DNA of 64,000 nucleotides from Phaeosaccion multiseriatum (taxonomy: Eukaryota > Protista > Ochrophyta, other classes): assembly GCA_965112735.1 (NCBI GenBank), contig OZ218950.1, positions 5,270,001 to 5,334,000 on the forward strand. The letters run 5' to 3'. Positions 1 to 62,696 of the stretch are shown piece by piece. The first letter of the stretch is position 1. Each line of letters begins with the position of its first letter. A model generated the notes under the pieces. That model was not told the DNA's origin. It was given only the letters and a program-made list of their open reading frames with translations, and searched no databases. The position numbers were made by a program, and so were the translations under genes.

Positions 1-3000
1 GCCTGACGGCGGGCAGCGGCACCAGCGGCGCTGGCGCTCTGGTGCAGATGTATGCTGGTGTGAGCACGGTACTGACGGGCGGTGTGGTGAGCATCGGGGG
101 CGGCGAGGGCCGCGCGTCCACGAGCGGGTCTGTGACTGTGCGCTCTCTGAACGCTGGCACGGCTGGCACGAGTGGTCGTCTGGTGTTCAGCTCCGGCACG
201 GCCAACTCCGGCAACAGCGGCGCCGTGCTCATCGGCAGCGGCGCGAGCACGGGAGGGCGCGGCGGCATGGTGAGCCTGACGGCGGGCAGCGGCACCAGCG
301 GCGCTGGCGGTCTGGTGCAGATGTATGCTGGTGTGAGCACGGTACTGACGGGCGGTGTGGTGAGCATCGGAGGCGGCGAGGGCCGCGCATCCACGAGCGG
401 GTCTGTGACTGTGCGCTCTCTGAACGCAGGGGCGGCCGGAACGAGTGGTCGTCTGGTGTTCAGCTCTGGCACGGCCAACTCCGGCAACAGCGGCGCCGTG
501 CTCATCGGCAGCGGCGCCAGCACGGGAGGACGTGGCGGCATGGTGAGCCTGACGGCGGGCAGCGGCACGAGTGGCGCTGGCGGTCTGGTGCAGATGTATG
601 CTGGCGTGAGCACGGTACTGACGGGCGGTGTGGTGAGCATCGGGGGCGGCGAGGGGCGTGCATCCACGAGCGGTTCTGTGACTGTGCGCTCTCTGAACGC
701 TGGCACGAAGGGTGCGAGTGGTCGTCTGGTGTTCAGCTCCGGCACGGCCAACTCCGGCAACAGCGGCGCCGTGCTCATCGGAAGTGGCGCCAGCACGGGA
801 GGACGTGGCGGCATGCTGAGCCTGACGGCGGGCAGCGGCACCAGCGGCGCTGGTGGTCTGGTGCAGATGTATGCTGGTGTGAGCACGGTACTGACGGGCG
901 GTGCGGTGAGCATCGGAGGCGGCGAGGGCCGCGCCTCCACGAGCGGGTCTGTGACTGTGCGCTCTCTGAACGCTGGCACGAAGGGTACGAGCGGTCGCCT
1001 GGTGTTCAGCTCCGGTACGGCCAACTCCGGCAACAGCGGCGCCGTGCTCATCGGCAGCGGCGCCAGCACGGGAGGACGTGGCGGCATGGTGAGCCTGACG
1101 GCGGGCAGTGGCACCAGCGGCGCTGGCGGTCTGGTGCAGATGTATGCTGGCGTGAGCACGGTACTGACGGGCGGTGTGGTGAGCATCGGGGGCGGCGAGG
1201 GCCGCGCGTCCACAAGTGGTTCTGTGACTGTGCGCTCTCTGAACGCTGGCACGGCCGGCACGAGTGGTCGTCTGGTGTTCAGCTCCGGCACGGCCAACTC
1301 CGGCAACAGCGGCGCCGTGCTCATCGGCAGCGGCGCCAGCACGGGAGGACGCGGCGGCATGGTGAGCCTGACGGCGGGCAGCGGCACTAGTGGCGCTGGC
1401 GGTCTGGTGCAGATGTATGCCGGCGTGAGCACGGTACTGACGGGCGGTGTGGTGAGCATCGGGGGCGGTGAGGGCCGCGCGTCCACAAGTGGGTCTGTGA
1501 CTGTGCGCTCTCTGAACGCTGGCACGAAGGGTACGAGTGGTCGCCTGGTGTTCAGCTCCGGCACGGCCAACTCCGGCAACAGCGGCGCCGTGCTCATCGG
1601 CAGCGGCGCCAGCACGGGAGGACGTGGCGGCATGGTGAGCCTGACGGCGGGCAGCGGCACGAGTGGCGCTGGCGGTCTGGTGCAGATGTATGCTGGCGTG
1701 AGCACGGCACTGACGGGCGGTGTGGTGAGCATCGGGGGCGGCGAGGGCCGCGCGTCCACGAGCGGGTCTGTGACTGTGCGCTCCCTGAACGCTGGCACGG
1801 CTGGCACGAGTGGTCGTCTGGTGTTCAGCTCCGGCACGGCCAACTCCGGCAACAGCGGCGCCGTGCTCATCGGCAGCGGCGCCAGCACGGGAGGACGTGG
1901 CGGCATGGTGAGCCTGACGGCGGGCAGCGGCACCAGCGGCGCTGGCGGCTTGGTGCAGATGTATGCTGGTGTGAGCACGGTACTGACGGGCGGTGTGGTG
2001 AGCATCGGGGGCGGCGAGGGCCGCGCGTCCACGAGCGGGTCTGTGACTGTGCGCTCTCTGAACGCTGGCACGGCCGGTACGAGTGGTCGTCTGGTGTTCA
2101 GCTCCGGCACGGCCAACTCCGGCAACAGCGGCGCCGTGCTCATCGGCAGTGGCGCCAGTACGGGAGGGCGTGGTGGCATGGTGAGCCTGACGGCGGGCAG
2201 CGGCACCAGCGGCGCTGGCGGTCTGGTGCAGATGTATGCTGGTGTGAGCACGGTACTGACGGGCGGTGTGGTGAGCATCGGGGGCGGCGAGGGTCGCGCG
2301 TCCACGAGTGGGTCTGTGACTGTGCGCTCTCTGAACGCTGGCACGGCTGGTACGAGTGGTCGTCTGGTGTTCAGCTCTGGCACAGCCAACTCCGGCAACA
2401 GCGGCGCCGTGCTCATCGGCAGCGGCGCCAGCACGGGAGGGCGTGGCGGCATGGTGAGCTTGACGGCGGGCAGCGGCACCAGCGGCGCTGGCGGTCTGGT
2501 GCAGATGTATGCTGGCGTGAGCACGGTACTGACGGGCGGTGTGGTGAGCATCGGAGGCGGCGAGGGCCGCGCGTCCACGAGCGGGTCTGTGACTGTGCGC
2601 TCTCTGAACGCTGGCACGGCTGGCACGAGTGGTCGTCTGGTGTTCAGCTCCGGCACGGCCAACTCCGGCAACAGCGGCGCCGTGCTCATCGGCAGCGGCG
2701 CCAGCACGGGAGGGCGTGGCGGCATGGTGAGCCTGACGGTGGGCAGCGGCACGAGTGGCGCTGGCGGTCTGGTGCAGATGTATGCTGGTGTGAGCACGGT
2801 ACTGACGGGTGGAGTAGTGAGTATCGGGGGCGGCGAGGGTCGTGCATCCACGAGCGGGTCTGTGACTGTGCGCTCTCTGAACGCTGGCACGGCTGGCACG
2901 AGTGGTCGTCTGGTGTTCAGCTCCGGCACGGCCAACTCCGGCAACAGCGGCGCCGTGCTCATCGGCAGCGGCGCCAGCACGGGAGGACGTGGCGGCATGC

Positions 3001-39000: not shown

Positions 39001-42000
39001 CTCCGGCACGGCCAACTCCGGCAACAGCGGCGCCGTGCTCATCGGCAGCGGCGCCAGCACGGGAGGACGTGGCGGCATGCTGAGCCTGACGGCGGGCAGC
39101 GGCACCAGCGGCGCTGGCGGTCTGGTGCAGATGTATGCTGGTGTGAGTTCGGCTCTGACGGGCGGTGTGGTGAGCATCGGGGGCGGCGAGGGCCGCGCGT
39201 CCACGAGCGGGTCTGTGACTGTGCGCTCTCTGAACGCTGGCACGGCTGGCACGAGTGGTCGTCTGGTGTTCAGCTCCGGCACGGCCAACTCCGGCAACAG
39301 CGGCGCCGTGCTCATCGGCAGCGGCGCCAGCACGGGAGGACGTGGCGGCATGCTGAGCCTGACGGCGGGCAGCGGCACCAGCGGCGCTGGCGGTCTGGTG
39401 CAGATGTATGCTGGTGTGAGCACGGTACTGACGGGCGGTGTGGTGAGCATCGGGGGCGGCGAGGGCCGCGCGTCCACGAGCGGGTCTGTGACTGTGCGCT
39501 CTCTGAACGCTGGCACGAAGGGTACGAGTGGTCGTCTGGTGTTCAGCTCCGGCACGGCCAACTCCGGCAACAGCGGCGCCGTGCTCATCGGCAGCGGCGC
39601 CAGCACGGGAGGACGTGGCGGCATGCTGAGCCTGACGGCGGGCAGCGGCACCAGCGGCGCTGGCGGTCTGGTGCAGATGTATGCTGGTGTGAGCACGGCC
39701 CTGACGGGCGGTGTGGTGAGCATCGGGGGCGGTGAGGGCCGCGCGTCCACGAGCGGGTCTGTGACTGTGCGCTCTCTGAACGCTGGCACGGCTGGTACGA
39801 GTGGTCGTCTGGTGTTCAGCTCCGGCACGGCCAACTCCGGCAACAGCGGCGCCGTGCTCATCGGCAGCGGCGCCAGCACGGGAGGTCGTGGCGGCCTCCT
39901 GAGCCTGACGGCGGGCAGCGGCACCAGCGGCGCTGGTGGACTCGTGCAGATGTATGCTGGCGTGAGCACGGCCCTGACAGGCGGTGTGGTGAGCATCGGG
40001 GGCGGCGAGGGCCGCGCGTCCACGAGCGGGTCTGTGACTGTGCGCTCTCTGAACGCTGGCACGGCTGGTACGAGTGGTCGCCTGGTGTTCAGCTCCGGCA
40101 CGGCCAACTCCGGCAACAGCGGCGCCGTGCTCATCGGCAGCGGCGCCAGCACGGGAGGACGTGGCGGCATGGTGAGCCTGACGGCGGGCAGCGGCACCAG
40201 CGGCGCTGGCGGTCTGGTACAGATGTATGCTGGTGTGAGTACGGCCCTGACGGGCGGTGTGGTGAGCATCGGGGGCGGCGAGGGCCGCGCGTCCACGAGC
40301 GGGTCTGTGACTGTGCGCTCTCTGAACGCTGGCACGGCCGGCACGAGTGGTCGTCTGGTGTTTAGCTCCGGCACGGCCAACTCCGGCAACAGCGGCGCCG
40401 TGCTCATCGGCAGCGGCGCCAGTACGGGAGGACGTGGCGGCATGCTGAGCCTGACGGCGGGCAGCGGCACCAGCGGCGCTGGCGCTCTGGTGCAGATGTA
40501 TGCTGGTGTGAGTACGGCCCTGACGGGCGGTGTGGTGAGCATCGGGGGCGGCGAGGGCCGCGCGTCCACGAGCGGGTCTGTGACTGTGCGCTCTCTGAAC
40601 GCTGGCACGAAGGGCACGAGTGGTCGTCTGGTGTTCAGCTCCGGCACGGCCAACTCCGGCAACAGCGGCGCCGTGCTCATCGGTAGTGGCGCCAGCACGG
40701 GAGGACGTGGCGGCATGCTGAGCCTGACGGCGGGCAGCGGCACCAGCGGCACTGGTGGTCTGGTGCAGATGTATGCTGGCGTGAGCACGGTACTGACGGG
40801 CGGTGTGGTGAGCATCGGGGGCGGCGAGGGCCGCGCGTCCACGAGCGGGTCTGTGACTGTGCGCTCTCTGAACGCTGGTGCGGCCGGCACGAGTGGTCGT
40901 CTGGTGTTCAGCTCCGGCACGGCCAACTCCGGCAACAGCGGCGCCGTGCTCATCGGAAGTGGCGCCAGCACAGGAGGACGTGGAGGCATGCTGAGCCTGA
41001 CGGCGGGCAGCGGCACCAGTGGCGCTGGTGGTCTGGTGCAGATGTATGCTGGTGTGAGTACGGCTCTGACGGGCGGTGTGGTGAGCATCGGGGGCGGCGA
41101 GGGCCGCGCGTCCACGAGCGGGTCTGTGACTGTGCGCTCTCTGAACGCTGGCACGGCTGGCGGGAGTGGTCGTCTGGTGTTCAGCTCCGGCACGGCCAAC
41201 TCCGGCAACAGCGGCGCCGTGCTCATCGGCAGCGGCGCCAGCACGGGAGGACGTGGCGGCATGCTGAGCCTGACGGCGGGCAGCGGCACCAGCGGCGCTG
41301 GCGGTCTGGTGCAGATGTATGCTGGTGTGAGTACGGCTCTGACGGGCGGTGTGGTGAGCATCGGGGGCGGCGAGGGCCGCGCGTCCACGAGCGGGTCTGT
41401 GACTGTGCGCTCTCTGAACGCCGGCTCGGCCGGCTCGAGTGGTCGTCTGGTGTTCAGCTCCGGCACGGCCAACTCCGGCAACAGCGGCGCCGTGCTCATC
41501 GGCAGCGGCGCCAGCACGGGAGGACGTGGCGGCATGCTGAGCCTGACGGCGGGCAGCGGCACCAGCGGCGCTGGTGGACTGGTGCAGATGTATGCGGGCG
41601 TGAGCACGGCCCTGACGGGCGGTGTGGTGAGCATCGGGGGCGGCGAGGGCCGCGCGTCCACGAGCGGGTCTGTGATAGTGCGCTCTCTGAACGCTGGCAC
41701 GGCCGGCTCGAGTGGTCGTCTGGTGTTCAGCTCCGGCACGGCCAACTCCGGCAACAGCGGCGCCGTGCTCATCGGCAGCGGCGCCAGCACGGGAGGACGT
41801 GGCGGCATGCTGAGCCTGACGGCGGGCAGCGGCACCAGCGGCGCTGGTGGACTGGTGCAGATGTATGCGGGCGTGAGCACGGCCCTGACGGGCGGTGTGG
41901 TGAGCATCGGGGGCGGTGAGGGCCGCGCGTCCACGAGCGGGTCTGTGACTGTGCGCTCTCTGAACGCTGGCACGAAGGGTACGAGTGGTCGTCTGGTGTT

Positions 42001-45000
42001 CAGCTCCGGCACGGCCAACTCCGGCAACAGCGGCGCCGTGCTCATCGGCAGCGGCGCCAGCACGGGAGGACGTGGGGGCATGGTGAGCCTGACGGCGGGC
42101 AGCGGCACCAGCGGCGCTGGTGGTCTGGTGCAGATGTATGCGGGTGTGAGTACGGCTCTGACGGGCGGTGTGGTGAGCATCGGGGGCGGCGAGGGCCGCG
42201 CGTCCACGAGCGGGTCTGTGACTGTGCGCTCTCTGAACGCTGGCACGGCCGGCTCGAGTGGTCGTCTGGTGTTCAGCTCCGGCACGGCCAACTCCGGCAA
42301 CAGCGGCGCCGTGCTCATCGGCAGCGGTGCCAGCACGGGAGGTCGTGGCGGCATGGTGAGCCTGACGGCGGGCAGCGGCACCAGCGGCACTGGCGGTCTG
42401 GTGCAGATGTATGCTGGTGTGAGCACGGCCCTGACGGGAGGAGTGGTGAGCATCGGGGGCGGCGAGGGCCGCGCGTCCACGAGCGGGTCTGTGACTGTGC
42501 GCTCTCTGAACGCTGGCACGGCCGGCACGAGTGGTCGTCTGGTGTTCAGCTCCGGCACGGCCAACTCCGGCAACAGCGGCGCCGTGCTCATCGGCAGCGG
42601 CGCCAGCACGGGAGGACGTGGCGGCATGCTGAGCCTGACGGCGGGCAGCGGCACCAGCGGCGCTGGCGGTCTGGTGCAGATGTATGCTGGTGTGAGCACG
42701 GTACTGACGGGCGGGGTGGTGAGCATCGGGGGCGGCGAGGGCCGCGCGTCCACGAGCGGGTCTGTGACTGTGCGCTCTCTGAACGCTGGCACGAAGGGTA
42801 CGAGTGGTCGTCTGGTGTTCAGCTCCGGCACGGCCAACTCCGGCAACAGCGGCGCCGTGCTCATCGGCAGCGGCGCCAGCACGGGAGGACGTGGCGGCAT
42901 GCTAAGCCTGACGGCGGGCAGCGGCACCAGCGGCGCTGGCGGTCTGGTGCAGATGTATGCTGGTGTGAGTACGGCCCTGACGGGCGGTGTGGTGAGCATC
43001 GGGGGCGGCGAGGGCCGCGCGTCCACGAGCGGGTCTGTGACTGTGCGCTCTCTGAACGCTGGCACGAAGGGTACGAGTGGTCGTCTGGTGTTCAGCTCCG
43101 GCACGGCCAACTCCGGCAACAGCGGCGCCGTGCTCATCGGCAGCGGCGCCAGCACGGGAGGTCGTGGCGGCATGGTGAGCCTGACGGCGGGCAGCGGCAC
43201 CAGCGGTGCCGGCGGTCTGGTGCAGATGTATGCTGGTGTGAGCACGGCCCTGACAGGCGGTGTGGTGAGCATCGGGGGCGGCGAGGGCCGCGCGTCCACG
43301 AGTGGGTCTGTGACTGTGCGCTCTCTGAACGCCGGCTCGGCCGGCTCGAGTGGTCGTCTGGTGTTCAGCTCCGGCACGGCCAACTCCGGCAACAGCGGCG
43401 CCGTGCTCATCGGCAGCGGCGCCAGCACGGGAGGGCGTGGCGGTATGCTGAGCCTGACGGCGGGCAGCGGCACCAGCGGCGCTGGTGGTCTGGTGCAGAT
43501 GTATGCTGGTGTGAGCACGGTACTGACGGGCGGTGTGGTGAGCATCGGGGGCGGTGAGGGCCGCGCGTCCACGAGCGGGTCTGTGACTGTGCGCTCTCTG
43601 AACGCTGGCACGGCCGGCACGAGTGGTCGTCTGGTATTCAGCTCCGGCACGGCCAACTCCGGCAACAGCGGCGCCGTGCTCATCGGCAGCGGCGCCAGCA
43701 CGGGAGGTCGTGGCGGCATGCTGAGCCTGACGGCGGGCAGCGGCACCAGCGGCGCTGGTGGACTCGTGCAGATGTATGCTGGTGTGAGTACGGCCCTGAC
43801 GGGCGGTGTGGTGAGCATCGGGGGCGGTGAGGGCCGCGCGTCAACGAGCGGGTCTGTGACTGTGCGCTCTCTGAACGCTGGCACGAAGGGTACGAGTGGT
43901 CGTCTGGTGTTCAGCTCCGGCACGGCCAACTCCGGCAACAGCGGCGCCGTGCTCATCGGAAGTGGCGCCAGCACGGGAGGACGTGGCGGCATGCTGAGCC
44001 TGACGGCGGGCAGCGGCACCAGCGGCGCTGGCGGTCTGGTGCAGATGTATGCTGGTGTGAGCACGGCCCTGACGGGAGGAGTGGTGAGCATCGGAGGCGG
44101 TGAGGGCCGCGCGTCCACGAGCGGGTCTGTGACTGTGCGCTCTCTGAACGCTGGCACGGCCGGCACGAGTGGTCGTCTGGTGTTCAGCTCCGGCACGGCC
44201 AACTCCGGCAACAGCGGCGCCGTGCTCATCGGCAGCGGCGCCAGCACGGGAGGACGTGGCGGCATGGTGAGCCTGACGGCGGGCAGCGGCACCAGCGGCG
44301 CTGGTGGTCTGGTTCAGATGTATGCTGGTGTGAGTACAGCCCTGACGGGCGGTGTGGTGAGCATCGGGGGCGGCGAGGGCCGCGCATCCACGAGCGGGTC
44401 TGTGACTGTGCGCTCTCTGAATGCTGGTACGGCTGGCACGAGTGGTCGTCTGGTGTTCAGCTCCGGCACTGCCAACTCCGGCAACAGCGGCGCCGTGCTC
44501 ATCGGCAGCGGCGCCAGCACGGGAGGACGTGGCGGAATGGTGAGCCTGACGGCGGGCAGCGGCACCAGCGGCGCTGGCGGTCTGGTACAGATGTATGCTG
44601 GTGTGAGCACGGCCCTGACGGGCGGTGTGGTGAGCATCGGGGGCGGCGAGGGCCGCGCGTCCACGAGCGGGTCTGTGACAGTGCGCTCTCTGAACGCTGG
44701 CACGGCTGGCACGAGTGGTCGTCTGGTATTCAGCTCCGGCACGGCCAACTCCGGCAACAGCGGCGCCGTGCTCATCGGCAGCGGCGCCAGCACGGGAGGG
44801 CGTGGTGGCATGCTGAGCCTGACGGCGGGCAGCGGCACCAGCGGCGCTGGCGGTCTGGTGCAGATGTATGCTGGTGTGAGTACGGCCCTGACGGGCGGTG
44901 TGGTGAGCATCGGGGGCGGCGAGGGCCGCGCGTCCACGAGCGGGTCTGTGACTGTGCGCTCTCTGAACGCTGGCACGGCTGGCACGAGTGGTCGTCTGGT

Positions 45001-48000
45001 GTTCAGCTCCGGCACGGCCAACTCCGGCAACAGCGGCGCCGTGCTCATCGGCAGCGGCGCCAGCACGGGAGGACGTGGCGGCATGGTGAGCCTGACGGCG
45101 GGCAGCGGCACCAGCGGCACTGGCGGTCTGGTGCAGATGTATGCTGGTGTGAGCACGGTACTGACGGGCGGTGTGGTGAGCATCGGGGGTGGTGAGGGCC
45201 GCGCGTCCACGAGCGGGTCTGTGACTGTGCGCTCTCTGAACGCTGGCACGAAGGGCACGAGTGGTCGTCTGGTGTTCAGCTCTGGCACGGCCAACTCCGG
45301 CAACAGCGGCGCCGTGCTCATCGGCAGCGGCGCCAGCACGGGAGGACGTGGCGGCATGCTGAGCCTGACGGCGGGCAGCGGCACCAGCGGCGCTGGCGGT
45401 CTGGTGCAGATGTATGCTGGTGTGAGTACGGCCCTGACGGGCGGTGTGGTGAGCATCGGGGGCGGCGAGGGCCGTGCATCCACGAGCGGGTCTGTGACTG
45501 TGCGCTCTCTGAACGCTGGCACGGCTGGCACGAGTGGTCGTCTGGTGTTCAGCTCCGGCACGGCCAACTCCGGCAACAGCGGCGCCGTGCTCATCGGCAG
45601 CGGCGCCAGCACGGGAGGACGTGGCGGCATGGTGAGCCTGACGGCGGGCAGCGGCACCAGCGGCGCTGGCGGTCTGGTGCAGATGTATGCTGGTGTGAGT
45701 ACAGCCCTGACGGGCGGTGTGGTGAGCATCGGCGGCGGCGAGGGCCGCGCATCCACGAGCGGGTCTGTGACTGTGCGCTCTCTGAACGCTGGTGCAGCTG
45801 GCACGAGTGGTCGTCTGGTGTTCAGCTCCGGCACGGCCAACTCCGGCAACAGCGGCGCCGTGCTCATCGGCAGCGGCGCCAGCACGGGAGGACGTGGCGG
45901 CATGCTGAGCCTGACGGCGGGCAGCGGCACCAGCGGCGCTGGCGGTCTGGTGCAGATGTATGCCGGCGTGAGCACGGCCCTGACGGGAGGTGTGGTGAGC
46001 ATCGGGGGTGGTGAGGGCCGCGCGTCCACGAGCGGGTCTGTGACTGTGCGCTCTCTGAACGCTGGCACGAAGGGTACGAGTGGTCGTCTGGTGTTCAGCT
46101 CCGGCACTGCCAACTCCGGCAACAGCGGCGCCGTGCTCATCGGCAGCGGCGCCAGCACGGGAGGACGTGGCGGCATGGTGAGTCTAACCGTTGGCAGCGG
46201 CACCAGTGGTGCTGGCGGGATCCTGCAGATGTATGCTGGCGTGAGTACGGTGATGACGGGAGGCGCGATGACCCTCGTAGGTGGCGAGGGCCGCGCGTCC
46301 ACGAGCGGGTCTGTGACTGTGCGCTCTCTGAACGCTGGTGCGGCTGGTACGAGTGGTCGTCTGGTGTTCAGCTCCGGCACGGCCAACTCCGGCAACAGCG
46401 GCGCCGTGCTCATCGGCAGCGGCGCCAGCACGGGAGGACGTGGTGGCATGCTGAGCCTGACGGCGGGCAGCGGCACCAGCGGCGCTGGTGGTCTGGTGCA
46501 GATATACGCTGGTGTGAGCACGGCTCTGACGGGCGGTGTGGTGAGCATCGGGGGCGGCGAGGGCCGCGCGTCCACGAGCGGGTCTGTGACTGTGCGCTCT
46601 CTGAACGCTGGCTCGGCTGGCTCGAGTGGTCGTCTGGTGTTCAGCTCCGGCACGGCCAACTCCGGCAACAGCGGCGCCGTGCTCATCGGCAGCGGCGCCA
46701 GCACGGGAGGTCGTGGCGGCATGCTGAGCCTGACGGCGGGCAGCGGCACCAGCGGCGCTGGCGGTCTGGTGCAGATGTATGCTGGTGTGAGTACGGCCCT
46801 GACGGGCGGTCTGGTGAGCATCGGGGGCGGCGAGGGCCGTGCATCCACGAGCGGGTCTGTGACTGTGCGCTCTCTGAACGCTGGCACGGCTGGCGCGAGT
46901 GGTCGTCTGGTGTTCAGCTCCGGCACGGCCAACTCCGGCAACAGCGGCGCCGTGCTCATCGGCAGCGGCGCCAGCACGGGAGGACGTGGAGGTATGCTGA
47001 GCCTGACGGCGGGCAGCGGCACCAGCGGCGCTGGCGGTCTGGTGCAGATGTATGCTGGTGTGAGTACGGCCCTGACGGGCGGTGTGGTGAGCATCGGGGG
47101 TGGTGAGGGCCGCGCGTCCACGAGCGGGTCTGTGACTGTGCGCTCTCTGAACGCTGGCACGGCCGGCACGAGTGGTCGTCTGGTGTTCAGCTCCGGCACG
47201 GCCAACTCCGGCAACAGCGGCGCCGTGCTCATCGGCAGCGGCGCCAGCACGGGAGGACGTGGCGGCATGCTGAGCCTGACGGCAGGCAGCGGCACCAGCG
47301 GCGCTGGTGGTCTGGTGCAGATGTATGCTGGTGTGAGTACGGCCCTGACGGGCGGTGTGGTGAGCATCGGGGGCGGCGAGGGCCGCGCGTCCACGAGCGG
47401 GTCTGTGACTGTGCGCTCTCTGAACGCTGGCACGGCTGGCACGAGTGGTCGTCTGGTGTTCAGCTCCGGCACGGCCAACTCTGGCAACAGCGGCGCCGTG
47501 CTCATCGGAAGTGGCGCCAGCACGGGAGGACGTGGCGGCATGCTGAGCCTGACGGCGGGCAGCGGCACCAGCGGCGCTGGCGGTCTGGTGCAGATGTATG
47601 CTGGTGTGAGTACGGCTCTGACGGGCGGTGTGGTGAGCATCGGGGGCGGTGAGGGCCGCGCGTCCACGAGCGGGTCTGTGACTGTGCGCTCTCTGAACGC
47701 TGGCACGGCTGGTACGAGTGGTCGTCTGGTGTTCAGCTCCGGCACGGCCAACTCCGGCAACAGCGGCGCCGTGCTCATCGGCAGCGGCGCCAGCACGGGA
47801 GGTCGTGGCGGCATGCTGAGCCTGACGGCGGGCAGCGGCACCAGCGGCGCTGGCGGTCTGGTGCAGATGTATGCTGGTGTGAGCACGGCCCTGACGGGCG
47901 GTGTGGTGAGCATCGGGGGCGGCGAGGGCCGCGCGTCCACGAGCGGGTCTGTGACTGTGCGCTCTCTGAACGCTGGCACGAAGGGTACGAGTGGTCGTCT

Positions 48001-51000
48001 GGTGTTCAGCTCCGGCACGGCCAACTCCGGCAACAGCGGCGCCGTGCTCATCGGCAGCGGCGCCAGCACGGGAGGACGTGGCGGCATGCTGAGCCTGACG
48101 GCGGGCAGCGGCACCAGCGGAGCTGGCGGTCTGGTGCAGATGTATGCTGGTGTAAGTACGGCCCTGACGGGCGGTGTGGTGAGCATCGGGGGCGGCGAGG
48201 GCCGCGCGTCCACGAGCGGGTCTGTGACTGTGCGCTCTCTGAACGCTGGCACGGCTGGCTCGAGTGGTCGTCTGGTGTTCAGCTCCGGCACGGCCAACTC
48301 CGGCAACAGCGGCGCCGTGCTCATCGGCAGCGGCGCCAGCACGGGAGGACGTGGAGGTATGCTGAGCCTGACGGCGGGCAGCGGCACCAGCGGCGCTGGC
48401 GGTCTGGTACAGATGTATGCTGGTGTGAGCACGGCTCTGACGGGCGGTGTGGTGAGCATCGGGGGCGGCGAGGGCCGCGCGTCCACGAGCGGGTCTGTGA
48501 CTGTGCGCTCTCTGAACGCTGGCACGGCCGGCTCGAGTGGTCGTCTGGTGTTCAGCTCCGGCACGGCCAACTCCGGCAACAGCGGCGCCGTGCTCATCGG
48601 CAGCGGCGCCAGCACGGGAGGACGTGGCGGCATGGTGAGCCTGACGGCGGGCAGCGGCACCAGCGGCGCTGGCGGTCTGGTGCAGATGTATGCTGGTGTG
48701 AGCACGGCTCTGACGGGCGGTGTGGTGAGCATCGGGGGCGGCGAGGGCCGCGCGTCCACGAGCGGGTCTGTGACTGTGCGCTCTCTGAACGCTGGCACGG
48801 CTGGTACGAGTGGTCGTCTGGTGTTCAGCTCCGGCACTGCCAACTCCGGCAACAGCGGCGCCGTGCTCATCGGCAGCGGCGCCAGCACGGGAGGACGTGG
48901 CGGCATGCTGAGCCTGACGGCGGGCAGCGGCACCAGCGGCGCTGGCGGTCTGGTGCAGATGTACGCTGGTGTGAGCACGGCCCTGACGGGCGGTGTGGTG
49001 AGCATCGGGGGTGGTGAGGGCCGCGCGTCCACGAGCGGGTCTGTGACTGTGCGCTCTCTGAACGCTGGCACGGCCGGCACGAGTGGTCGTCTGGTGTTCA
49101 GCTCCGGCACGGCCAACTCCGGCAACAGCGGCGCCGTGCTCATCGGCAGCGGCGCCAGCACGGGAGGTCGTGGCGGCATGCTGAGCCTGACGGCGGGCAG
49201 CGGCACCAGCGGCGCTGGCGGTCTGGTACAGATGTATGCTGGTGTGAGTACGGCCCTGACGGGCGGTGTGGTGAGCATCGGGGGCGGCGAGGGCCGCGCG
49301 TCCACGAGCGGGTCTGTGACTGTGCGCTCTCTGAACGCTGGCACGGCCGGCACGAGTGGTCGTCTGGTGTTCAGCTCCGGCACGGCCAACTCCGGCAACA
49401 GCGGCGCCGTGCTCATCGGCAGCGGCGCCAGCACGGGAGGCCGTGGAGGCATGCTGAGCCTGACGGCGGGCAGCGGCACCAGCGGCGCTGGCGGTCTGGT
49501 GCAGATGTATGCTGGTGTGAGCACGGTACTGACGGGCGGTGTGGTGAGCATCGGGGGTGGTGAGGGCCGCGCGTCCACGAGCGGGTCTGTGACTGTGCGC
49601 TCTCTGAACGCTGGCACGAAGGGTACGAGTGGTCGTCTGGTGTTCAGCTCCGGCACGGCCAACTCCGGCAACAGCGGCGCCGTGCTCATCGGCAGCGGCG
49701 CCAGCACGGGAGGACGTGGGGGCATGGTGAGCCTGACGGCGGGCAGCGGCACCAGCGGCGCTGGTGGTCTGGTGCAGATGTATGCGGGTGTGAGTACGGC
49801 TCTGACGGGCGGTGTGGTGAGCATCGGGGGCGGCGAGGGCCGCGCGTCCACGAGCGGGTCTGTGACTGTGCGCTCTCTGAACGCTGGCACGGCCGGCTCG
49901 AGTGGTCGTCTGGTGTTCAGCTCCGGCACGGCCAACTCCGGCAACAGCGGCGCCGTGCTCATCGGCAGCGGTGCCAGCACGGGAGGACGTGGCGGCATGG
50001 TGAGTCTAACCGTTGGCAGCGGCACCAGTGGTGCTGGCGGGATCCTGCAGATGTATGCTGGCGTGAGTACGGTGATGACGGGAGGCGCGATGACCCTCGT
50101 AGGTGGCGAGGGCCGCGCGTCCACGAGCGGGTCTGTGACTGTGCGCTCTCTGAACGCTGGCACGGCTGGCACGAGTGGTCGTCTGGTGTTCAGCTCCGGC
50201 ACGGCCAACTCCGGCAACAGCGGCGCCGTGCTCATCGGCAGCGGCGCCAGCACGGGAGGACGTGGTGGCATGCTGAGCCTGACGGCGGGCAGCGGCACCA
50301 GCGGCGCTGGTGGTCTGGTGCAGATATACGCTGGTGTGAGCACGGCTCTGACGGGCGGTGTGGTGAGCATCGGGGGCGGCGAGGGCCGCGCGTCCACGAG
50401 CGGGTCTGTGACTGTGCGCTCTCTGAACGCTGGCACGGCTGGCTCGAGTGGTCGTCTGGTGTTCAGCTCCGGCACGGCCAACTCCGGCAACAGCGGCGCC
50501 GTGCTCATCGGCAGCGGCGCCAGCACGGGAGGTCGTGGCGGCATGCTGAGCCTGACGGCGGGCAGCGGCACCAGCGGCGCTGGCGGTCTGGTGCAGATGT
50601 ATGCTGGTGTGAGTACGGCCCTGACGGGCGGTGTGGTGAGCATCGGCGGCGGCGAGGGCCGCGCGTCCACGAGCGGGTCTGTGACTGTGCGCTCTCTGAA
50701 CGCTGGCTCGGCTGGCACGAGTGGTCGTCTGGTGTTCAGCTCCGGCACGGCCAACTCCGGCAACAGCGGCGCCGTGCTCATCGGCAGCGGCGCCAGCACG
50801 GGAGGACGTGGAGGTATGCTGAGCCTGACGGCGGGCAGCGGCACCAGCGGCGCTGGCGGTCTGGTGCAGATGTATGCTGGTGTGAGCACGGTACTGACGG
50901 GAGGCGTGGTGAGCATCGGGGGCGGCGAGGGACGCGCGTCCACGAGTGGGTCTGTGACTGTGCGCTCTCTGAACGCTGGCACGGCGGGCACGAGTGGTCG

Positions 51001-54000
51001 TCTGGTGTTCAGCTCCGGCACGGCCAACTCCGGCAACAGCGGCGCCGTGCTCATCGGCAGCGGCGCCAGCACGGGAGGTCGTGGCGGCATGCTGAGCCTG
51101 ACGGCGGGCAGCGGCACCAGCGGCGCTGGCGGTCTGGTACAGATGTATGCTGGTGTGAGTACGGCCCTGACGGGCGGTGTGGTGAGCATCGGGGGCGGCG
51201 AGGGCCGCGCGTCCACGAGCGGGTCTGTGACTGTGCGCTCTCTGAACGCTGGCACGAAGGGCACGAGTGGTCGTCTGGTGTTCAGCTCCGGCACGGCCAA
51301 CTCCGGCAACAGCGGCGCCGTGCTCATCGGAAGTGGCGCCAGCACGGGAGGACGTGGTGGCATGGTGAGCCTGACGGCGGGCAGCGGCACCAGCGGCGCT
51401 GGCGGTCTGGTGCAGATGTATGCTGGTGTGAGCACGGCTCTGACGGGCGGTGTGGTGAGCATCGGGGGCGGTGAGGGCCGCGCGTCCACGAGCGGGTCTG
51501 TGACTGTGCGCTCTCTGAACGCTGGCACGGCTGGCTCGAGTGGTCGTCTGGTGTTCAGCTCCGGCACGGCCAACTCCGGCAACAGCGGCGCTGTGCTCAT
51601 CGGCAGCGGCGCCAGCACGGGAGGTCGTGGAGGCATGCTGAGCCTGACGGCGGGCAGCGGCACCAGCGGCGCTGGCGGTCTGGCGCAGATGTATGCTGGT
51701 GTGAGTACGGCCCTGACGGGCGGTGTGGTGAGCATCGGGGGCGGTGAGGGCCGCGCGTCCACGAGCGGGTCTGTGACTGTGCGCTCTCTGAACGCTGGCA
51801 CGGCCGGCACGAGTGGTCGTCTGGTGTTCAGCTCCGGCACAGCCAACTCTGGCAACAGCGGCGCCGTGCTCATCGGCAGCGGCGCCAGCACGGGAGGACG
51901 TGGCGGCATGCTGAGCCTGACGGCGGGCAGCGGCACCAGCGGCGCTGGCGGTCTGGTGCAGATGTATGCTGGTGTGAGTACGGTACTGACGGGCGGTGTG
52001 GTGAGCATCGGCGGCGGCGAGGGACGCGCGTCCACGAGCGGGTCTGTGACTGTGCGCTCTCTGAACGCTGGCACGGCTGGCACGAGTGGTCGTCTGGTGT
52101 TCAGCTCCGGCACGGCCAACTCCGGCAACAGCGGCGCCGTGCTCATCGGCAGCGGCGCCAGCACGGGAGGTCGTGGCGGCATGCTGAGCCTGACGGCGGG
52201 CAGCGGCACCAGCGGCGCTGGCGGTCTGGTGCAGATGTATGCTGGCGTGAGTACGGCTCTGACCGGCGGGGTGGTGAGCATCGGGGGCGGCGAGGGCCGC
52301 GCGTCCACGAGCGGGTCTGTGACTGTGCGCTCTCTGAACGCTGGCACGGCCGGCACGAGTGGTCGTCTGGTGTTCAGCTCCGGCACGGCCAACTCCGGCA
52401 ACAGCGGCGCCGTGCTCATCGGCAGCGGCGCCAGCACGGGAGGACGTGGCGGCATGCTGAGCCTGACGGCAGGCAGCGGCACCAGCGGCGCTGGCGGTCT
52501 GGTGCAGATGTACGCTGGTGTGAGCACGGCTCTGACGGGCGGTGTGGTGAGCATCGGGGGCGGTGAGGGCCGCGCGTCCACGAGCGGGTCTGTGACTGTG
52601 CGCTCTCTGAACGCTGGCACGAAGGGTACGAGTGGTCGTCTGGTGTTCAGCTCCGGCACGGCCAACTCCGGCAACAGCGGTGCCGTGCTCATCGGCAGCG
52701 GCGCCAGCACGGGAGGTCGTGGCGGCATGCTGAGCCTGACGGCGGGCAGCGGCACCAGCGGCGCTGGCGGTCTGGTACAGATGTATGCTGGTGTGAGCAC
52801 GGTACTGACGGGCGGTGTGGTGAGCATCGGGGGTGGTGAGGGTCGCGCGTCCACGAGCGGGTCTGTGACTGTGCGCTCTCTGAACGCTGGTACGGCTGGC
52901 TCGAGTGGTCGTCTGGTGTTCAGCTCCGGCACGGCCAACTCCGGCAACAGCGGCGCCGTGCTCATCGGCAGCGGCGCCAGCACGGGAGGACGTGGCGGCA
53001 TGCTGAGCCTGACGGCGGGCAGCGGCACCAGCGGCGCCGGTGGTCTGGTGCAGATGTATGCTGGTGTGAGCACGGTACTGACAGGCGGTGTGGTGAGCAT
53101 CGGGGGCGGCGAGGGCCGCGCGTCCACGAGCGGGTCTGTGACTGTGCGCTCTCTGAACGCTGGAGCGGCTGGCTCGAGTGGTCGTCTGGTGTTCAGCTCC
53201 GGCACGGCCAACTCCGGCAACAGCGGCGCCGTGCTCATCGGCAGCGGCGCCAGCACGGGAGGACGTGGCGGCATGCTGAGCCTGACGGCGGGCAGCGGCA
53301 CCAGCGGCGCTGGCGGTCTGGTGCAGATGTATGCTGGTGTGAGCACGGCCCTGACAGGCGGTGTGGTGAGCATCGGGGGCGGTGAGGGCCGCGCGTCCAC
53401 GAGCGGGTCTGTGACTGTGCGCTCTCTGAACGCTGGCTCGGCTGGTACGAGTGGTCGTCTGGTGTTCAGCTCCGGCACGGCCAACTCCGGCAACAGCGGC
53501 GCCGTGCTCATCGGCAGCGGCGCCAGCACGGGAGGTCGTGGAGGCATGCTGAGCCTGACGGCGGGCAGCGGCACCAGCGGCGCTGGCGGTCTGGTGCAGA
53601 TGTATGCTGGTGTGAGCACGGCCCTGACGGGCGGTGTGGTGAGCATCGGGGGCGGCGAGGGCCGCGCGTCCACGAGCGGGTCTGTGACTGTGCGCTCTCT
53701 GAACGCTGGCACGGCTGGCACGAGTGGTCGTCTGGTGTTCAGCTCCGGCACGGCCAACTCCGGCAACAGCGGCGCCGTGCTCATCGGCAGCGGCGCCAGC
53801 ACGGGAGGACGTGGCGGTATGCTGAGCCTGACGGCGGGCAGCGGCACCAGCGGCGCTGGCGGTCTGGTGCAGATGTATGCTGGTGTGAGCACGGCCCTGA
53901 CGGGCGGTGTGGTGAGCATCGGGGGTGGTGAGGGCCGCGCGTCCACGAGCGGGTCTGTGACTGTGCGCTCTCTGAACGCTGGCACGAAGGGTACGAGTGG

Positions 54001-55620
54001 TCGTCTGGTGTTCAGCTCCGGCACGGCCAACTCCGGCAACAGCGGCGCCGTGCTCATCGGCAGCGGCGCCAGCACGGGAGGACGTGGCGGCATGCTGAGC
54101 CTGACGGCGGGCAGCGGCACCAGCGGCGCTGGCGGTCTGGTACAGATGTATGCTGGTGTGAGCACGGTACTGACGGGCGGTGTGTTGAGCATCGGGGGTG
54201 GTGAGGGCCGCGCATCCACGAGCGGGTCTGTGACTGTGCGCTCTCTGAACGCTGGCACGGCTGGTACGAGTGGTCGTCTGGTGTTCAGCTCCGGCACGGC
54301 CAACTCCGGCAACAGCGGCGCCGTGCTCATCGGCAGCGGCGCCAGCACGGGAGGACGTGGCGGCATGCTGAGCCTGACGGCGGGCAGCGGCACCAGCGGC
54401 GCTGGTGGTCTGGTGCAGATATATGCCGGTCTGAGCACGGCTCTGACGGGCGGTGTGGTGAGCATCGGGGGTGGTGAGGGCCGCGCGTCCACGAGCGGGT
54501 CTGTGACTGTGCGCTCTCTGAACGCTGGCACGGCCGGCTCGAGTGGTCGTCTGGTGTTCAGCTCCGGCACGGCCAACTCCGGCAACAGCGGCGCCGTGCT
54601 CATCGGCAGCGGCGCCAGTACGGGAGGACGTGGCGGCATGCTGAGCCTGACGGCGGGCAGCGGCACCAGCGGCGCTGGCGGTCTCGTGCAGATGTATGCT
54701 GGTGTGAGTACGGCCCTGACGGGAGGTGTGTTGAGCATCGGGGGCGGCGAGGGCCGCGCGTCCACGAGCGGGTCTGTGACTGTGCGCTCTCTGAACGCTG
54801 GCTCGGCTGGTACGAGTGGTCGTCTGGTGTTCAGCTCCGGCACGGCCAACTCTGGCAACAGCGGCGCCGTGCTCATCGGCAGCGGCGCCAGCACGGGAGG
54901 ACGTGGCGGCATGCTGAGCCTGACGGCGGGCAGCGGCACCAGCGGCGCTGGTGGTCTGGTGCAGATGTATGCTGGTGTGAGCACGGCCCTGACGGGCGGT
55001 GTGGTGAGCATCGGGGGCGGCGAGGGCCGTGCGTCCACGAGCGGGTCTGTGACTGTGCGCTCTCTGAACGCTGGCACGGCTGGCACGAGTGGTCGTCTGG
55101 TGTTTAGCTCCGGCACGGCCAACTCCGGCAACAGCGGCGCCGTGCTCATCGGCAGCGGCGCCAGCACGGGAGGACGTGGCGGCATGCTGAGCCTGACGGC
55201 GGGCAGCGGCACCAGCGGCGCTGGTGGTCTGGTACAGATGTATGCTGGTGTGAGCACGGCTCTGACGGGCGGTGTGGTGAGCATCGGGGGCGGCGAGGGA
55301 CGCGCGTCCACGAGCGGGTCTGTGACTGTGCGCTCTCTGAACGCTGGCACGAAGGGTACGAGTGGTCGTCTGGTGTTCAGCTCCGGCACGGCCAACTCTG
55401 GTAACAGCGGCGCCGTGCTCATCGGTAGCGGCGCCAGCACGGGAGGACGTGGCGGCATGCTGAGCCTGACGGCGGGCAGCGGCACCAGCGGCGCTGGCGG
55501 TCTGGTGCAGATGTATGCCGGTGTGAGTACGGCCTTGACAGGCGGTGTGGTGAGCATCGGGGGAGGTGAGGGCCGCACATCCACGAGCGGGTCTGTGACT
55601 GTGCGCTCTCTGAACGCTGG
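1..55620 (+). repeat. Coding tandem array, 273-bp unit (91 aa), 204 unit starts in the window, consensus about 71% GC
   Basis: The ATG of 'MYAG' recurs at 48, 321, ..., 26256 (48+96x273), 37766, ..., 55511 (37766+65x273). Unit: MYAGVSTVLTGGVVSIGGGEGRASTSGSVTVRSLNAGTAGTSGRLVFSSGTANSGNSGAVLIGSGASTGGRGGMVSLTAGSGTSGAGGLVQ. GC was hand-counted on the consensus unit (193/273). Confidence 0.99.
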
Positions 55621-56455
55621 TACAGCGGGTGCGAGTGGTCGACTGGTGTTTAGCTCTGGTGTGGCCACCTCCGGCAACAGCGGATCTGTACTGATTGGCA
55701 CGGGAGCTGCCACCGGTGGTCGCGGAGGTGCCATTTCGATGGCTGTGGCAGCCGGTGACAGTGGAATGGGTGGAAGTATTACTATTGAGGCGGGCAGCAC
55801 CAGTGCGACCACCATGAATGGTGGGAATGTGGTGGTGAAGCCGGGCAACAACGGCGGTACCACTCTGCCTGGAAGCATTGAACTGCAGGACGGCCTTGGG
55901 AATGTGGCAGTGACAGTTTCGGCAACTACGGTCATTGACAGCGCATCTACGACAGATCTGTCTTCTACGACGGCCATGACCATTGATTCGGGTGATACCT
56001 TGTCAATCGCGTCGGCCGCAGCGACTACGCTTGTTTCGACTACTTCGGTAGCTATCACAGCAAGCGGAGGTGCGATCACCCTGAACCCGTCCACCCATGT
56101 GACTTTCAACGGCAAGGAAGTTCGAGGCTGGATGATGGGTTCTGGGACGCATTCAAGCGGCGCACTTCTCACCACTGGTACAACCGCAGCTACCATCGAT
56201 GCAATTGTTGGGCAGTTCACAAGAACAGCGTCGGGAGACTTGTCAGGTGGTGGCACAGAGGTGGTTCGAATCGCGAACTCATTGGTCACCACGTCAGACT
56301 ACGTCATCGGCACCATCACCTCTTCCTGCGATAACAAAGTGATGGGCCTGGTAAGCACCACGATTAGTGCGGGAACAATCGACTTCGGCGTCTACTTGGA
56401 TTGTTCGACCTCGAGCACTTATACTTTGAGTTTCGTTGTCTACAAGATTCTATGA
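3..56455 (+). CDS. Giant Gly/Ser/Thr-rich tandem-repeat protein (>=18,800 aa, 5'-truncated by the window); predicted beta-helical/solenoid fibre with a unique C-terminal domain; apparently split by assembly indels at 26304-37503
   Basis: The frame is open from nt 3 (LTAGSGTSGAGALVQMY...). ORFs 42..(26303), 26341..(30340) and 37496..56455 all encode the same 91-aa unit. The repeat frame has no stop codons, and inter-copy differences are mostly synonymous. The last segment reads through a degenerate unit into a unique C-terminus ending ...YTLSFVVYKIL-TGA-TGA, followed by an AT-rich 3' region. Confidence 0.85.
26304..37503 (+). other. Low-quality consensus zone within the array: dozens of small indels (net +44 nt), probably sequencing or polishing artefacts
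   Basis: Extra G/C bases in homopolymers (e.g. 26304-26309, 30340-30342, 31061-31063, 31113-31115, 31594-31596, 37501-37503), dinucleotide slips (~32008, ~36224) and merged-allele strings (acggctactg at 32016 and 35315; atgcgtgagc at 37437). The 273-nt phase is exact outside this zone. Confidence 0.8.
55621..56455 (+). other. Non-repetitive C-terminal region of the giant protein: degenerate repeats, 8-aa-periodic beta segment, ~88-aa terminal beta-rich domain with two Cys
   Basis: From the translation of the end of ORF 37496..56455: GGAISMAVAAG / GGSITIEAG / GGNVVVKPG, then TVIDSAST-TDLSSTTA-MTIDSGDT-LSIASAAA-TTLVSTTS-VAITASGG-AITLNPST, then ATIDAIVGQFTRT...LSFVVYKIL*. Confidence 0.85.
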
Positions 56456-59030: not shown

Positions 59031-59125
59031 GTTTGCACACTGTTTTCTGTTCACCACAATCCCCGATCCTCGGATCGATCGGGCGGGAGTCGGCCGTAGA
59101 GTGCCATCGCCTCCCCCTAAAAGTA
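59031..59125. promoter_or_regulatory. Very short divergent intergenic region (putative bidirectional promoter)
   Basis: The argD ATG at 59030 (-) and the next gene's candidate ATGs at 59126 or 59159 (+) are only ~95-130 nt apart, head to head. No specific promoter motif was identified. Confidence 0.45.
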
Positions 59126-59215
59126 ATGCGGAAGTTTCGTGCCGCATTGTATAGACAAATGATTCGCAGGAGGCGAAGCAGCTGCGATAGCAGCAGCACC
59201 AGCAGCAGTAGTAGC

Positions 59216-59247
<32 letters not shown>

Positions 59248-61656: not shown

Positions 61657-62661
61657 ATGGGTGGCCTGCCCGCGGTGCGAAAAAGCAACTGTCCCCGGGC
61701 AGCAGCACCACTGACAGGAGCATACAGCAGCAAGGGGAACGCGAGTAGTTCAGCAACCTTCATGTCAGGTACCCTGCGTCCTGACAAGTCGAGCGACTCT
61801 CATAATGGAGGAGGAAATCTAATGGCAACTAATGGAGCGCCAGGTGAGGGGGGATGCGGGAAGGGGGCGGTTGTTCCTGGTAGGCTAGCTTGCGGCCGTA
61901 GATCTTCCCTGGTTACTTGCGGGGAGGGGGGGTGCAATTCCGCTTATTCGATTCATGCGCAGGGGCGGACAGCGAAAACCTTACCCGTTCTGCCTTGCAC
62001 ACGCGCCCCATGATTTCCCCCACATCGGCAACAGCAGGTCGTGGCGGGGGCAAGAGCCGAAAGGGGGCTGTCCCAACTCACCCAGGAGGTGAAGGGGGAG
62101 GAGGGGAGTGGACAATGGCCCATCCCAAGCCAGGAGTAGCCGGTTTGGAAACGATGGGTGCCCTGACCCCGCAGCGGGTATCTTCAGCGCCGCCCACGGA
62201 GCATTCTGCAAACATGGCTTCTTGGCAGCATCAGCAGCAGCACCAGCAGCACCAGCACCAGCACCAGCAGCAGCAGCAGCAACATGCCCATGGCAGGGCC
62301 CCACCGCAGCAGCAGCAGTCAGGTGGGCCCATGGGAATGGGCGCACCTCAGCAGCAGCAGGCTCGAATGATGGCTCCCCCACCACAACAAGGACAGCAGG
62401 CCACTCCCCCGCATCCGCCTCAGGCACAGATAGGTATGCCTGGCCAAATGTCTCCGCAGCGCCTACCACAGCAGCAGCAGGGAGGGCAGCAGCCGCCGCC
62501 ACCGCAAGGTATCCCCCAAGGCCACATCACTGGACAAATGGGGCAGCGAGCAGGGCCCCAACAAGGCCAAATGGGGATGGGCGGCGGCCCTGGGATGCCG
62601 AGAGTAGGAATGAATGTGATGCCAGCACAATCATCCCAGCAGATGGCGTTGCCTCCTCATG

Positions 62662-62696
<35 letters not shown>

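Follow-up and report, generated by a model that had tools for sequence, protein, structure and literature searches.

A Megadalton-Scale Array of Near-Identical 91-Residue Modules in Phaeosaccion multiseriatum and Its Glycine-Rich, Fiber-Like Relatives in Other Eukaryotes

Described Repetitive Fibers and the Phaeosaccion Array

In phage tailspikes and in the protein MYRF, the Peptidase_S74 (S74) domain trimerizes the triple β-helix upstream of it and then cleaves itself (PMC8326128, PMC3742443), and phage-like fibers bearing S74 are common in the polinton-like viruses of protists, one of them with an H_lectin tip (PMC12220804). A different design is that of MpAFP/MpIBP from Marinomonas primoryensis, a 1.5 MDa protein in which ~120 near-identical repeats of 104 residues serve as a rigid extender for a distal ligand-binding region (PMC3492233, PMC4083281). 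The multidomain enzyme PKZILLA-1 reaches 45,212 residues and 4.7 MDa (bioRxiv 10.1101/2024.01.29.577497). Here we describe a 64,000-nucleotide stretch of the Phaeosaccion multiseriatum genome (contig OZ218950.1, positions 5,270,001 to 5,334,000 of the forward strand; the window in what follows), most of which is a tandem array encoding a 91-residue Gly-rich module and ending in a discrete C-terminal domain. We consider it fairly probable that positions 1–56,455 make up the 3′ portion of a single, very large gene of a eukaryote, that its product belongs to an undescribed family of secreted, Gly-rich fiber proteins, and that the insertions and deletions (indels) in the center of the array are consensus errors.

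The relatives of the window protein resemble the S74-bearing phage tail fibers and tailspikes (with a C-terminal intramolecular chaperone auto-processing, ICA, domain), MYRF, and the polinton-like fibers in that S74 directly follows Gly-rich repeats, and the window protein itself resembles phage fibers in its elongated repetitive shaft and small β-sandwich end knob, whose structural matches are fiber and tailspike tips. For an S74 domain that is internal rather than terminal, MYRF provides the precedent (PMC3742443, PMC8326128). Phage and viral fibers differ, however, in showing no sequence similarity to the window protein in the collections searched; the module is new, the protein is 10–50 times larger, and the gene is cellular and intron-bearing. 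A further difference from phage fibers is that the family relatives have repeats on both sides of S74, while the part of the gene in the window is without S74 in the pieces scanned.

MpAFP likewise derives its megadalton size from near-identical repeats whose copy number is hard to establish, and it is the nearest functional analogue. Its repeats are Ca2+-dependent and Ig-like, however, and belong to a repeats-in-toxin (RTX) adhesin exported by type I secretion, whereas the window unit is Gly-rich, six-runged, and eukaryotic, and the likeness is one of design principle only. An RTX or type I repeat adhesin was considered and rejected: the unit contains no Asp, neither GGxGxD nor an Ig-like extender is present, and Pfam and NCBIfam give no matches. 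The likeness to PKZILLA-1 is that of an outsized gene in a microalgal-type genome, of a kind that routine assembly and annotation would miss, but the window protein is a monotonous succession of one structural repeat. With a nominal mass of at least 1.7 MDa, it is large but below PKZILLA-1 and titin, and no record. A repetitive fiber with an S74 chaperone and a knob is a known design; novelty lies in the module, in the setting of a eukaryotic cell, in the internal position of S74, and in the scale.

Two further repeat types resemble the ~15-residue rungs from which the module is built. The heads of YadA-like trimeric autotransporters are left-handed parallel β-rolls of 14–16-residue repeats, similar to the window unit in rung length (~15), in flavor (x-V-x-I-G-x-G-A...), and in the trimeric fibrous adhesin design, proposed for the window protein. 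A trimeric autotransporter adhesin was nevertheless rejected, as there is no Pfam Hep_Hag/YadA match, the C-terminus is a soluble β-sandwich and not a membrane anchor, and the host is a eukaryote. Ice-nucleation proteins such as InaZ consist of 16-residue, G/S/T/A-rich tandem repeats with a higher-order period and without Cys or Pro, which also resemble the window rungs. Ice-nucleation repeats (PF00818; octapeptide-based, AGYGSTxTAxxxSxLx) were rejected on the grounds that no Pfam or PDB-profile match is found, the motif differs, and the window unit is strongly basic with a 91-residue super-period.

A Coding Array with a Broken Center

Tandem Repeats Finder (TRF) reports a period of 273 bp over positions 1–55,683, with 203.8 copies, 96% matches, and a score of 102,471. 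The array touches position 1 and is thus cut by the left edge of the window, so that the gene extends upstream of it. Unit-by-unit alignment to the consensus resolves 203 units and a degenerate 204th (55,466–55,738) with 40 mismatches. The consensus unit translates to LTAGSGTSGAGGLVQMYAGVSTVLTGGVVSIGGGEGRASTSGSVTVRSLNAGTAGTSGRLVFSSGTANSGNSGAVLIGSGASTGGRGGMVS, 91 residues that include 25 Gly, 16 Ser, 10 Thr, 10 Val, and 9 Ala and no Pro, Cys, Trp, His, Asp, or Lys; its mass is 8.18 kDa, and its net charge is about +3. The array has a guanine + cytosine (GC) content of ~70% and a constant GC skew of ~+0.19, and GC is ~55% beyond 56 kb. An earlier, sequence-only reading of this DNA had described a 273-bp array open at the left edge, a unit with 70 of 91 residues drawn from G, S, T, A, and V, no Pro, Cys, Trp, His, or Asp, and a mass of ~8.2 kDa, as well as a unique C-terminal domain followed by a normal stop. 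The TRF boundaries, the computed consensus, and the 238-residue C-terminus (55,739–56,452) ending at a TGA agree with each of these, and the three tryptic peptides that it had proposed for proteomic searches, ASTSGSVTVR, SLNAGTAGTSGR, and LVFSSGTANSGNSGAVLIGSGASTGGR, are all contained in the consensus.

Codon statistics were obtained by comparing the 185 intact units with the consensus. The 1,151 differences are distributed as 201, 134, and 816 over codon positions 1, 2, and 3. At the codon level, 704 synonymous stand against 295 nonsynonymous differences (ratio of nonsynonymous to synonymous rates, dN/dS, ~0.17), and none of the 185 units contains a stop. The other two plus-strand frames give 94/916 and 106/978 synonymous/nonsynonymous differences. 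A synonymous excess is also seen in one of the antisense frames (685/399). We assign the plus strand on homology: the frame on this strand leads into the C-terminal domain, and homologues of that domain terminate at the same point. Antisense "shadow" open reading frames (ORFs) lie across the array (16,377–56,292, minus strand; the longest of 4,649 residues), and a gene caller could pick the wrong strand here.

These data indicate that the array is a real protein-coding gene, as the earlier reading had proposed from the letters alone; the codon-position bias and a homologue in the Nephroselmis transcriptome now bear this out. That the array might instead be a noncoding satellite, with open frames as a by-product of its high GC, would fit the several long open frames on both strands (antisense up to that 4,649-residue frame) and the synonymous excess of one antisense frame. 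This alternative is effectively refuted by protein homology: proteins with the same 91-residue module occur in transcriptomes and genomes of distant eukaryotes, the frame enters a C-terminal domain that is conserved together with its stop, and the differences concentrate at third codon positions. The class-III aminotransferase gene next to the array is split by GT..AG introns, which marks the window as eukaryotic nuclear DNA.

The claim that all 204 units lie in one reading frame does not hold in the assembly. In frame 3, only positions 3–26,303 are open, and a literal reading stops at 27,951; in frame 2, the open stretch is 37,496–56,455 (6,319 residues, 569 kDa). Between them are 39 indels, all in units 97–138 and all but one of them insertions (38 insertions, 1 deletion). 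A single G accounts for 25 insertions and a single C for 6, in each case added to an existing run, and the others are GGG, GT, CT, and similar. The 42 central units carry these 39 indels and 106 substitutions, compared with 0 indels and 1,078 substitutions in the 161 flanking units (Fisher p = 5e-39); over ~44 kb, the flanks show neither an indel nor a stop. Mismatches per unit number 1.7–2.7 in the center versus 5–10 at both array ends. Because the indels are insertion-biased, occur in homopolymer or dinucleotide runs, and are confined to the units that are most alike, we read them as most likely being residual long-read consensus errors and not mutations. For comparison, a long-read, Pilon-polished metagenome contig with a related array is riddled by frameshifts throughout, and metagenome contig L010 (short-read assembled, judged from its name) carries 4,135 residues of diverged units in one frame.

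The indels could also be real, in which case the locus would be a decaying pseudogene, with an N-terminal product cut short near 27,951 and an orphaned 3′ ORF as the most it could yield. The 39 frame-interrupting indels and the literal stop of the frame-3 ORF are what such a locus would present, but decay should spread substitutions and stops over the whole array, and the flanks show no indels, no stops, and a dN/dS of ~0.17. The indel zone is, moreover, the one with the fewest substitutions, and a ratio of 38:1 for insertions in homopolymer or dinucleotide runs is a technical signature. We therefore regard a pseudogene as improbable. On the preferred explanation of consensus errors, the locus stands as a warning that long-read assemblies contain clusters of frameshift errors in giant homogeneous arrays and that annotators discard or fragment such genes.

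The length of the array is a separate matter. As the central zone consists of error-ridden, near-identical units, the copy number there is uncertain, and neither the exact protein length nor the unit count of the central 11 kb is fixed by the assembly. The central near-identical units may have been expanded or collapsed, so that the gene and the family are real but the true protein is much shorter or longer than ~204 units. Low substitution divergence combined with homopolymer indels, as found in the central 11 kb, is typical of a poorly anchored, unpolished consensus, and the arrays of the relatives all end at contig ends, giving no independent full-length count. On the other hand, exact repeats of at least 600 bp are found nowhere in the array; it shows no higher-order period, no multiunit block duplication, and no distance-dependent divergence (mean pairwise difference of ~9.5 per 273 bp at all lags); and the 185 intact units comprise 170 different DNA sequences. 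Taken together, these results argue that the assembly was not inflated by block copying. In addition, each of the 162 flank units can be told apart from the others and is in frame, and long arrays are also present in relatives, with minimum counts of 75 units on the ERZ28548090 contig described below, 44 in L010, and 38 in L023. A wrongly assembled length thus appears unlikely, though it deserves real weight. The earlier figures of at least 18,800 residues and 1.7 MDa apply only if the central indels are errors; as assembled, the uninterrupted pieces are one of at least 8,767 residues (787 kDa) and the 6,319-residue ORF. If the array is continuous, the window alone encodes at least 18,800 residues and at least 1.7 MDa, which would place the protein among the largest encoded by any genome; no other known eukaryotic protein would take near-identical domain repetition as far.

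Relatives, Peptidase_S74, and the Fold of the Module

The family is defined here by proteins P0001–P0032 and loci L004–L034. An exhaustive phmmer search with the 238-residue C-terminus against 1.84 billion representative proteins returned only four matches, the best being P0001 (E = 8.9e-12). Word-indexed searches found relatives of the repeat in Phytophthora fragariae (PF002_g28544) and P. ramorum (H3H8H8) and among the proteins of the marine eukaryote transcript catalogue (MERC), and a 3,798-residue protein from the Nephroselmis pyriformis transcriptome of the Marine Microbial Eukaryote Transcriptome Sequencing Project (MMETSP) matches at E = 2.8e-73. A pattern scan of metagenomes gave 26 loci, many of them marine. 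A hidden Markov model (HMM) built from the window units finds in-register units in all relatives, including the 91-residue spacing in L010, L022, L023, and L004–L006. Signal-peptide-like N-termini are present in the Nephroselmis protein P0032 (MGGLRGQKAMLQALAVLLLFAQQTWA) and in the Phytophthora proteins P0009 and P0013, and in both groups the signal peptide is followed by a nonrepeat N-terminal domain. On the basis of the transcriptome proteins and of the signal peptides in Nephroselmis and Phytophthora, members of the family appear to be transcribed and to enter the secretory pathway.

The searches of curated families gave no comparable result. Pfam has no valid match to six units (3–1,640) or to the last three units with the C-terminus (54,920–56,452), NCBIfam and PHROGs have no matches to the window protein, and sequence searches of the PDB with the single protein and with the unit profile found nothing meaningful. 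In tblastn searches of the INPHARED phages there were no matches, and pattern scans of IMG/VR and of the GTDB bacterial and archaeal genomes, which reach fairly close relatives only, found no relatives. We found no literature describing the family. One Pfam candidate was rejected: the six tandem units score 29.5 bits for Arabinose_Iso_C (PF11762), above the 25-bit gathering cutoff, but by summed weak matches, with no single stretch passing and the best covering 31 of 144 profile positions. This repeat-summed false positive could mislead automatic annotation.

Sequence comparison thus points to an undescribed eukaryotic family that spans green algae, oomycetes, and marine protists. The earlier reading had pointed to similar repeat proteins from stramenopile genomes and proposed homology searches with the unit and the C-terminus; those searches return homologues in Phytophthora, Nephroselmis, and marine metagenomes, which bears this out for P. 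fragariae and P. ramorum and shows the family to be wider, as it includes the green alga Nephroselmis. Its suggestion of an extracellular protein is plausible in light of the signal peptides of the Nephroselmis and Phytophthora homologues and of two conserved Cys residues in the tip. The existence of a family that is unnamed in Pfam, NCBIfam, PHROGs, and the PDB yet common in marine eukaryote metagenomes is, in our opinion, more important than the size of any one member. Short-read assemblies systematically break the genes of this family, which is probably why it has been overlooked.

Related loci carry an S74 domain next to the repeats, a feature that the sequence-only reading had missed. On the 94.6 kb long-read contig ERZ28548090 contig_16749 (L004–L008), at least 75 homogeneous 273-bp units run off the contig end and are preceded on the same strand by at least 33 kb of diverged repeats of the same kind; the N-terminus is not reached within the 33 kb upstream of the homogeneous array. 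Two S74 domains, of the type also known as the chaperone of endosialidase, are found on this contig, one clean in L008 (45.7 bits, E = 7.8e-12) and one split by a frameshift. In L010, the domain (39.3 bits, E = 8.2e-10) occupies residues 288–352 of an uninterrupted 996-residue ORF with Gly-rich repeats on both sides, and it is followed downstream by small GT..AG introns and then by at least 44 units. In L008 and L010, S74 lies upstream of the array. No Pfam match to S74 (PF13884) occurs in the two scanned pieces of the window (3–1,640 and 54,920–56,452), between which the array consists of the same unit; an S74 domain in the window gene, if present, sits upstream of the window and, to judge from the relatives, would lie several kb ahead of the homogeneous array. 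The internal S74 of the relatives points to a trimeric, self-cleaving fiber, with possible cleavage of the precursor at its S74 site.

The L004–L008 locus (41,120–94,646, at least 53 kb on one strand) has a further peculiarity. Its S74 domains are ~18.5 kb apart, and each is followed within ~200 nt downstream by Gly-rich repeats with no obvious new start. This arrangement suggests a polyprotein cut into several fibers, on a contig that is full of frameshifts.

The length of the module is strictly kept. Start-to-start spacing is exactly 91 residues over at least 34 consecutive units of L010, and the same holds in L022 and L023, although TRF reports no DNA repeat in any of the three. Because the spacing is kept where the DNA repeats have decayed, module length is fixed by structure and not by recent amplification. 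An alignment of 123 diverged units (mean identity 48.5%) shows six rungs spaced by 15/15/16/15/15/15 residues, each with GG or SG, then x-h-x-h with alternating hydrophobics, then x-x-G. The window unit itself has 26 identities in 91 positions at a lag of 15 residues, a value reached by 18 of 5,000 shuffles. To judge from sequence, this rung pattern is what a β-solenoid or β-helix would show, each rung contributing one short strand and a Gly-rich turn. Since the same repeats flank S74 in the relatives, we infer a trimeric β-helix, and the repeats probably fold as a β-helical fiber of that kind. The AlphaFold2 (AF2) monomer assigns the repeats a predicted local distance difference test (pLDDT) of 70–80 with no strands by the Define Secondary Structure of Proteins (DSSP) algorithm; as a speculation, a strandless yet fairly confident monomer is what would be expected if the strands pair between chains. 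At 4.8 Å per rung, or ~2.9 nm per unit, the shaft would be ~0.47 µm long for ~162 in-frame units and ~0.59 µm for ~204.

Beyond the last unit, the order of elements is conserved. In L009, L013, L015, and L018 and in P0001, P0003, P0015, and others, the last unit is followed by a Gly-rich cap, an S/T-rich neck, a domain of ~85–100 residues with two conserved Cys, and the stop. Many relatives thus share the shaft-neck-tip layout described earlier for the window protein, and their stop codons fall at the same position. Homologues of the C-terminal domain are P0001, P0002, P0003, P0015, L009, L013, L015, and L018, and tblastn places neck matches directly after the last unit in L014, L015, L017, and L018. 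The 238-residue C-terminus of the window protein is acidic (isoelectric point, pI, 4.3), and its cap contains the strands GGSITIEAG, GGNVVVKPG, and GSIELQDG. A first AlphaFold run with nine sequences was too poor to use (pLDDT 54); with a 31-row alignment, AF2 (model mc3fc9d995586) predicts residues 336–420 as a six-stranded β-sandwich at pLDDT 83–93, and the neck stays below 50.

Foldseek searches with this knob against the PDB gave weak matches to the H-type lectins SLL-2 and HPA (template modeling score, TM, 0.48–0.56), to the R1 pyocin fiber tip, and to C-terminal domains of phage tailspikes, all at E ≥ 0.013 and TM ~0.5. Against predicted viral structures (BFVD), there are 20 matches at E < 1e-3, mostly to tail-fiber-like proteins of uncultured tailed phages and some to giant-virus proteins. 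An H-type lectin (PF09458) was rejected: Pfam gives no match at E up to 1, and there is a weak fold resemblance only.

Variation among the metagenome proteins bears on how these terminal parts are combined. The 770-residue P0004 has two copies of the cap/neck motif (GG.V.VK.G ... G.I.LQDG.G) and, instead of a repeat array, a C-terminal coiled coil and a hydrophobic anchor; the cap and neck thus seem to be a separable module. In P0014 and P0020, an extra domain of ~170 residues ending in ...HYCDGIAYPRATGEYHSVSIVGT follows the β-sandwich, which argues that the tip is modular across the family.

The Proposed Fiber and Neighboring Sequence

A working model can be put together from these parts. The product would be a secreted precursor; its Gly-rich modules would form a rigid, strongly basic shaft (+3 per unit), probably by folding as a trimer. 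The S74 chaperone seen in the relatives would drive trimerization and then cleave itself. As a rigid extender, the shaft would keep the knob at a long distance from the opposite end of the protein, and the acidic, two-Cys knob could be a distal binding or oligomerization element. In this model the internal S74 would link a cellular eukaryotic fiber to the folding machinery of phage tail fibers, with trimerization followed by self-cleavage as the mechanism.

Several points weigh against this account. The ORF is physically broken in the assembly, and the case for errors is drawn from the pattern of the breaks. The 5′ end of the gene with its start codon falls outside the window, as would a signal peptide or an S74 domain; transcript support comes from the relatives and not from the window locus, and the association with S74 is seen in relatives at 50–60% unit identity and not in the window gene. 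The antisense count of 685/399 mimics a coding signal, and the strand call is accordingly based on homology and not on synonymous excess. Finally, the AF2 monomer gives the repeats a pLDDT of 70–80 without DSSP strands, leaving the fold of the shaft a prediction, and the Foldseek matches of the knob to the PDB are weak.

The phage-like features raise the question of whether this is a host gene at all or a viral fiber gene brought in by a polinton-like virus, a virophage, or a giant-virus insertion. Such an origin would accommodate the S74 domains of the relatives and the mostly phage tail-fiber-like and giant-virus proteins among the BFVD matches of the knob, and there is the parallel of protist-integrated polinton-like viruses that encode phage-like S74 fibers, one with an H_lectin tip (PMC12220804). 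The GC of the array (70%, compared with ~55% in the flank) would fit as well, but codons for Gly and Ala raise GC by themselves, and the GC at third codon positions (GC3) is 0.58 in the tip compared with 0.68–0.73 in the neighboring gene. A gene of at least 56 kb exceeds the whole genome of a polinton-like virus (14–40 kb), an intron-containing host aminotransferase gene lies ~530 bp downstream, and L010 has spliceosomal introns. The homologues in Nephroselmis and Phytophthora carry eukaryotic signal peptides, and there are no matches in the INPHARED phages, in PHROGs, or in a scan of IMG/VR that reaches fairly close relatives. We consider a viral gene very improbable.

Returning to a host gene, the several lines of evidence can be joined into a broader but tentative proposal, which we put forward as a possibility and not as the expected outcome. 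The window protein would be the largest assembled member of a widespread eukaryotic family of secreted megadalton fibers, found in green algae, oomycetes, and many marine protists. Its 91-residue module would form a trimeric β-helix in cis, an internal, phage-type self-cleaving chaperone would cut the giant precursor into separate fibers, and the number of modules would, like the molecular ruler suggested by the earlier reading, set a length of ~0.5 µm. Such a fiber could be what a cell-surface hair or fibril, known so far only from microscopy, is made of. Nephroselmis and Phytophthora both have flagellate cells, and the presence of the family in both is a hint, only suggestive, to the structure built, whether surface fibrils, flagellar hairs, or adhesive threads. 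Flagellar hairs and extrusomes had been put forward as candidate sites by the earlier reading.

The coordinates of the array, of its C-terminal parts, and of the neighboring features are collected in Table 1.

Table 1. Features of the 64,000-nucleotide window, in window coordinates
Feature	Position	Strand	Remarks
Array units 1–96 and partial 97th	1–26,303	+	Frame 3, at least 8,767 residues without stop, 787 kDa, pI 12; no indels in unit alignment
Central zone, units 97–138	26,304–37,501	+	39 indels, frame broken many times
Array units 138–204	37,496–55,738	+	Frame 2, part of the 6,319-residue ORF at 37,496–56,455; last unit degenerate
Cap and neck	55,739–56,197	+	Gly-rich strands, then S/T-rich neck of short strands
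C-terminal domain, ~85 residues	56,198–56,452	+	Six-stranded β-sandwich (AF2), two conserved Cys
TGA stop	56,453–56,455	+	Second in-frame TGA next; position relative to domain as in relatives
Class-III aminotransferase gene	56,987–58,622	-	At least 5 exons, GT..AG introns of ~85 nt
(AGT)23 microsatellite	59,207–59,275		Within ORF 58,970–59,842; encodes poly-Ser
Short ORFs	59,805–60,451	+	Coiled-coil-like; no Pfam matches
GCA/GCAGCA/GCAACA microsatellites	62,225–62,964		Poly-Ala or poly-Gln by frame; AT skew +0.43

The aminotransferase gene is acetylornithine/ornithine aminotransferase-like, with positions 21–403 of the Pfam Aminotran_3 profile covered piecewise. It converges on the giant gene, and its 3′ end lies ~530 bp from the stop of the latter. 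Farther along, the region with the GCA-type microsatellites probably belongs to another gene, as a low-complexity stretch of its coding sequence. The short, coiled-coil-like ORFs on the plus strand (e.g., VRQLEQEVDRLEADQRSLL) may be exons of an unannotated gene.

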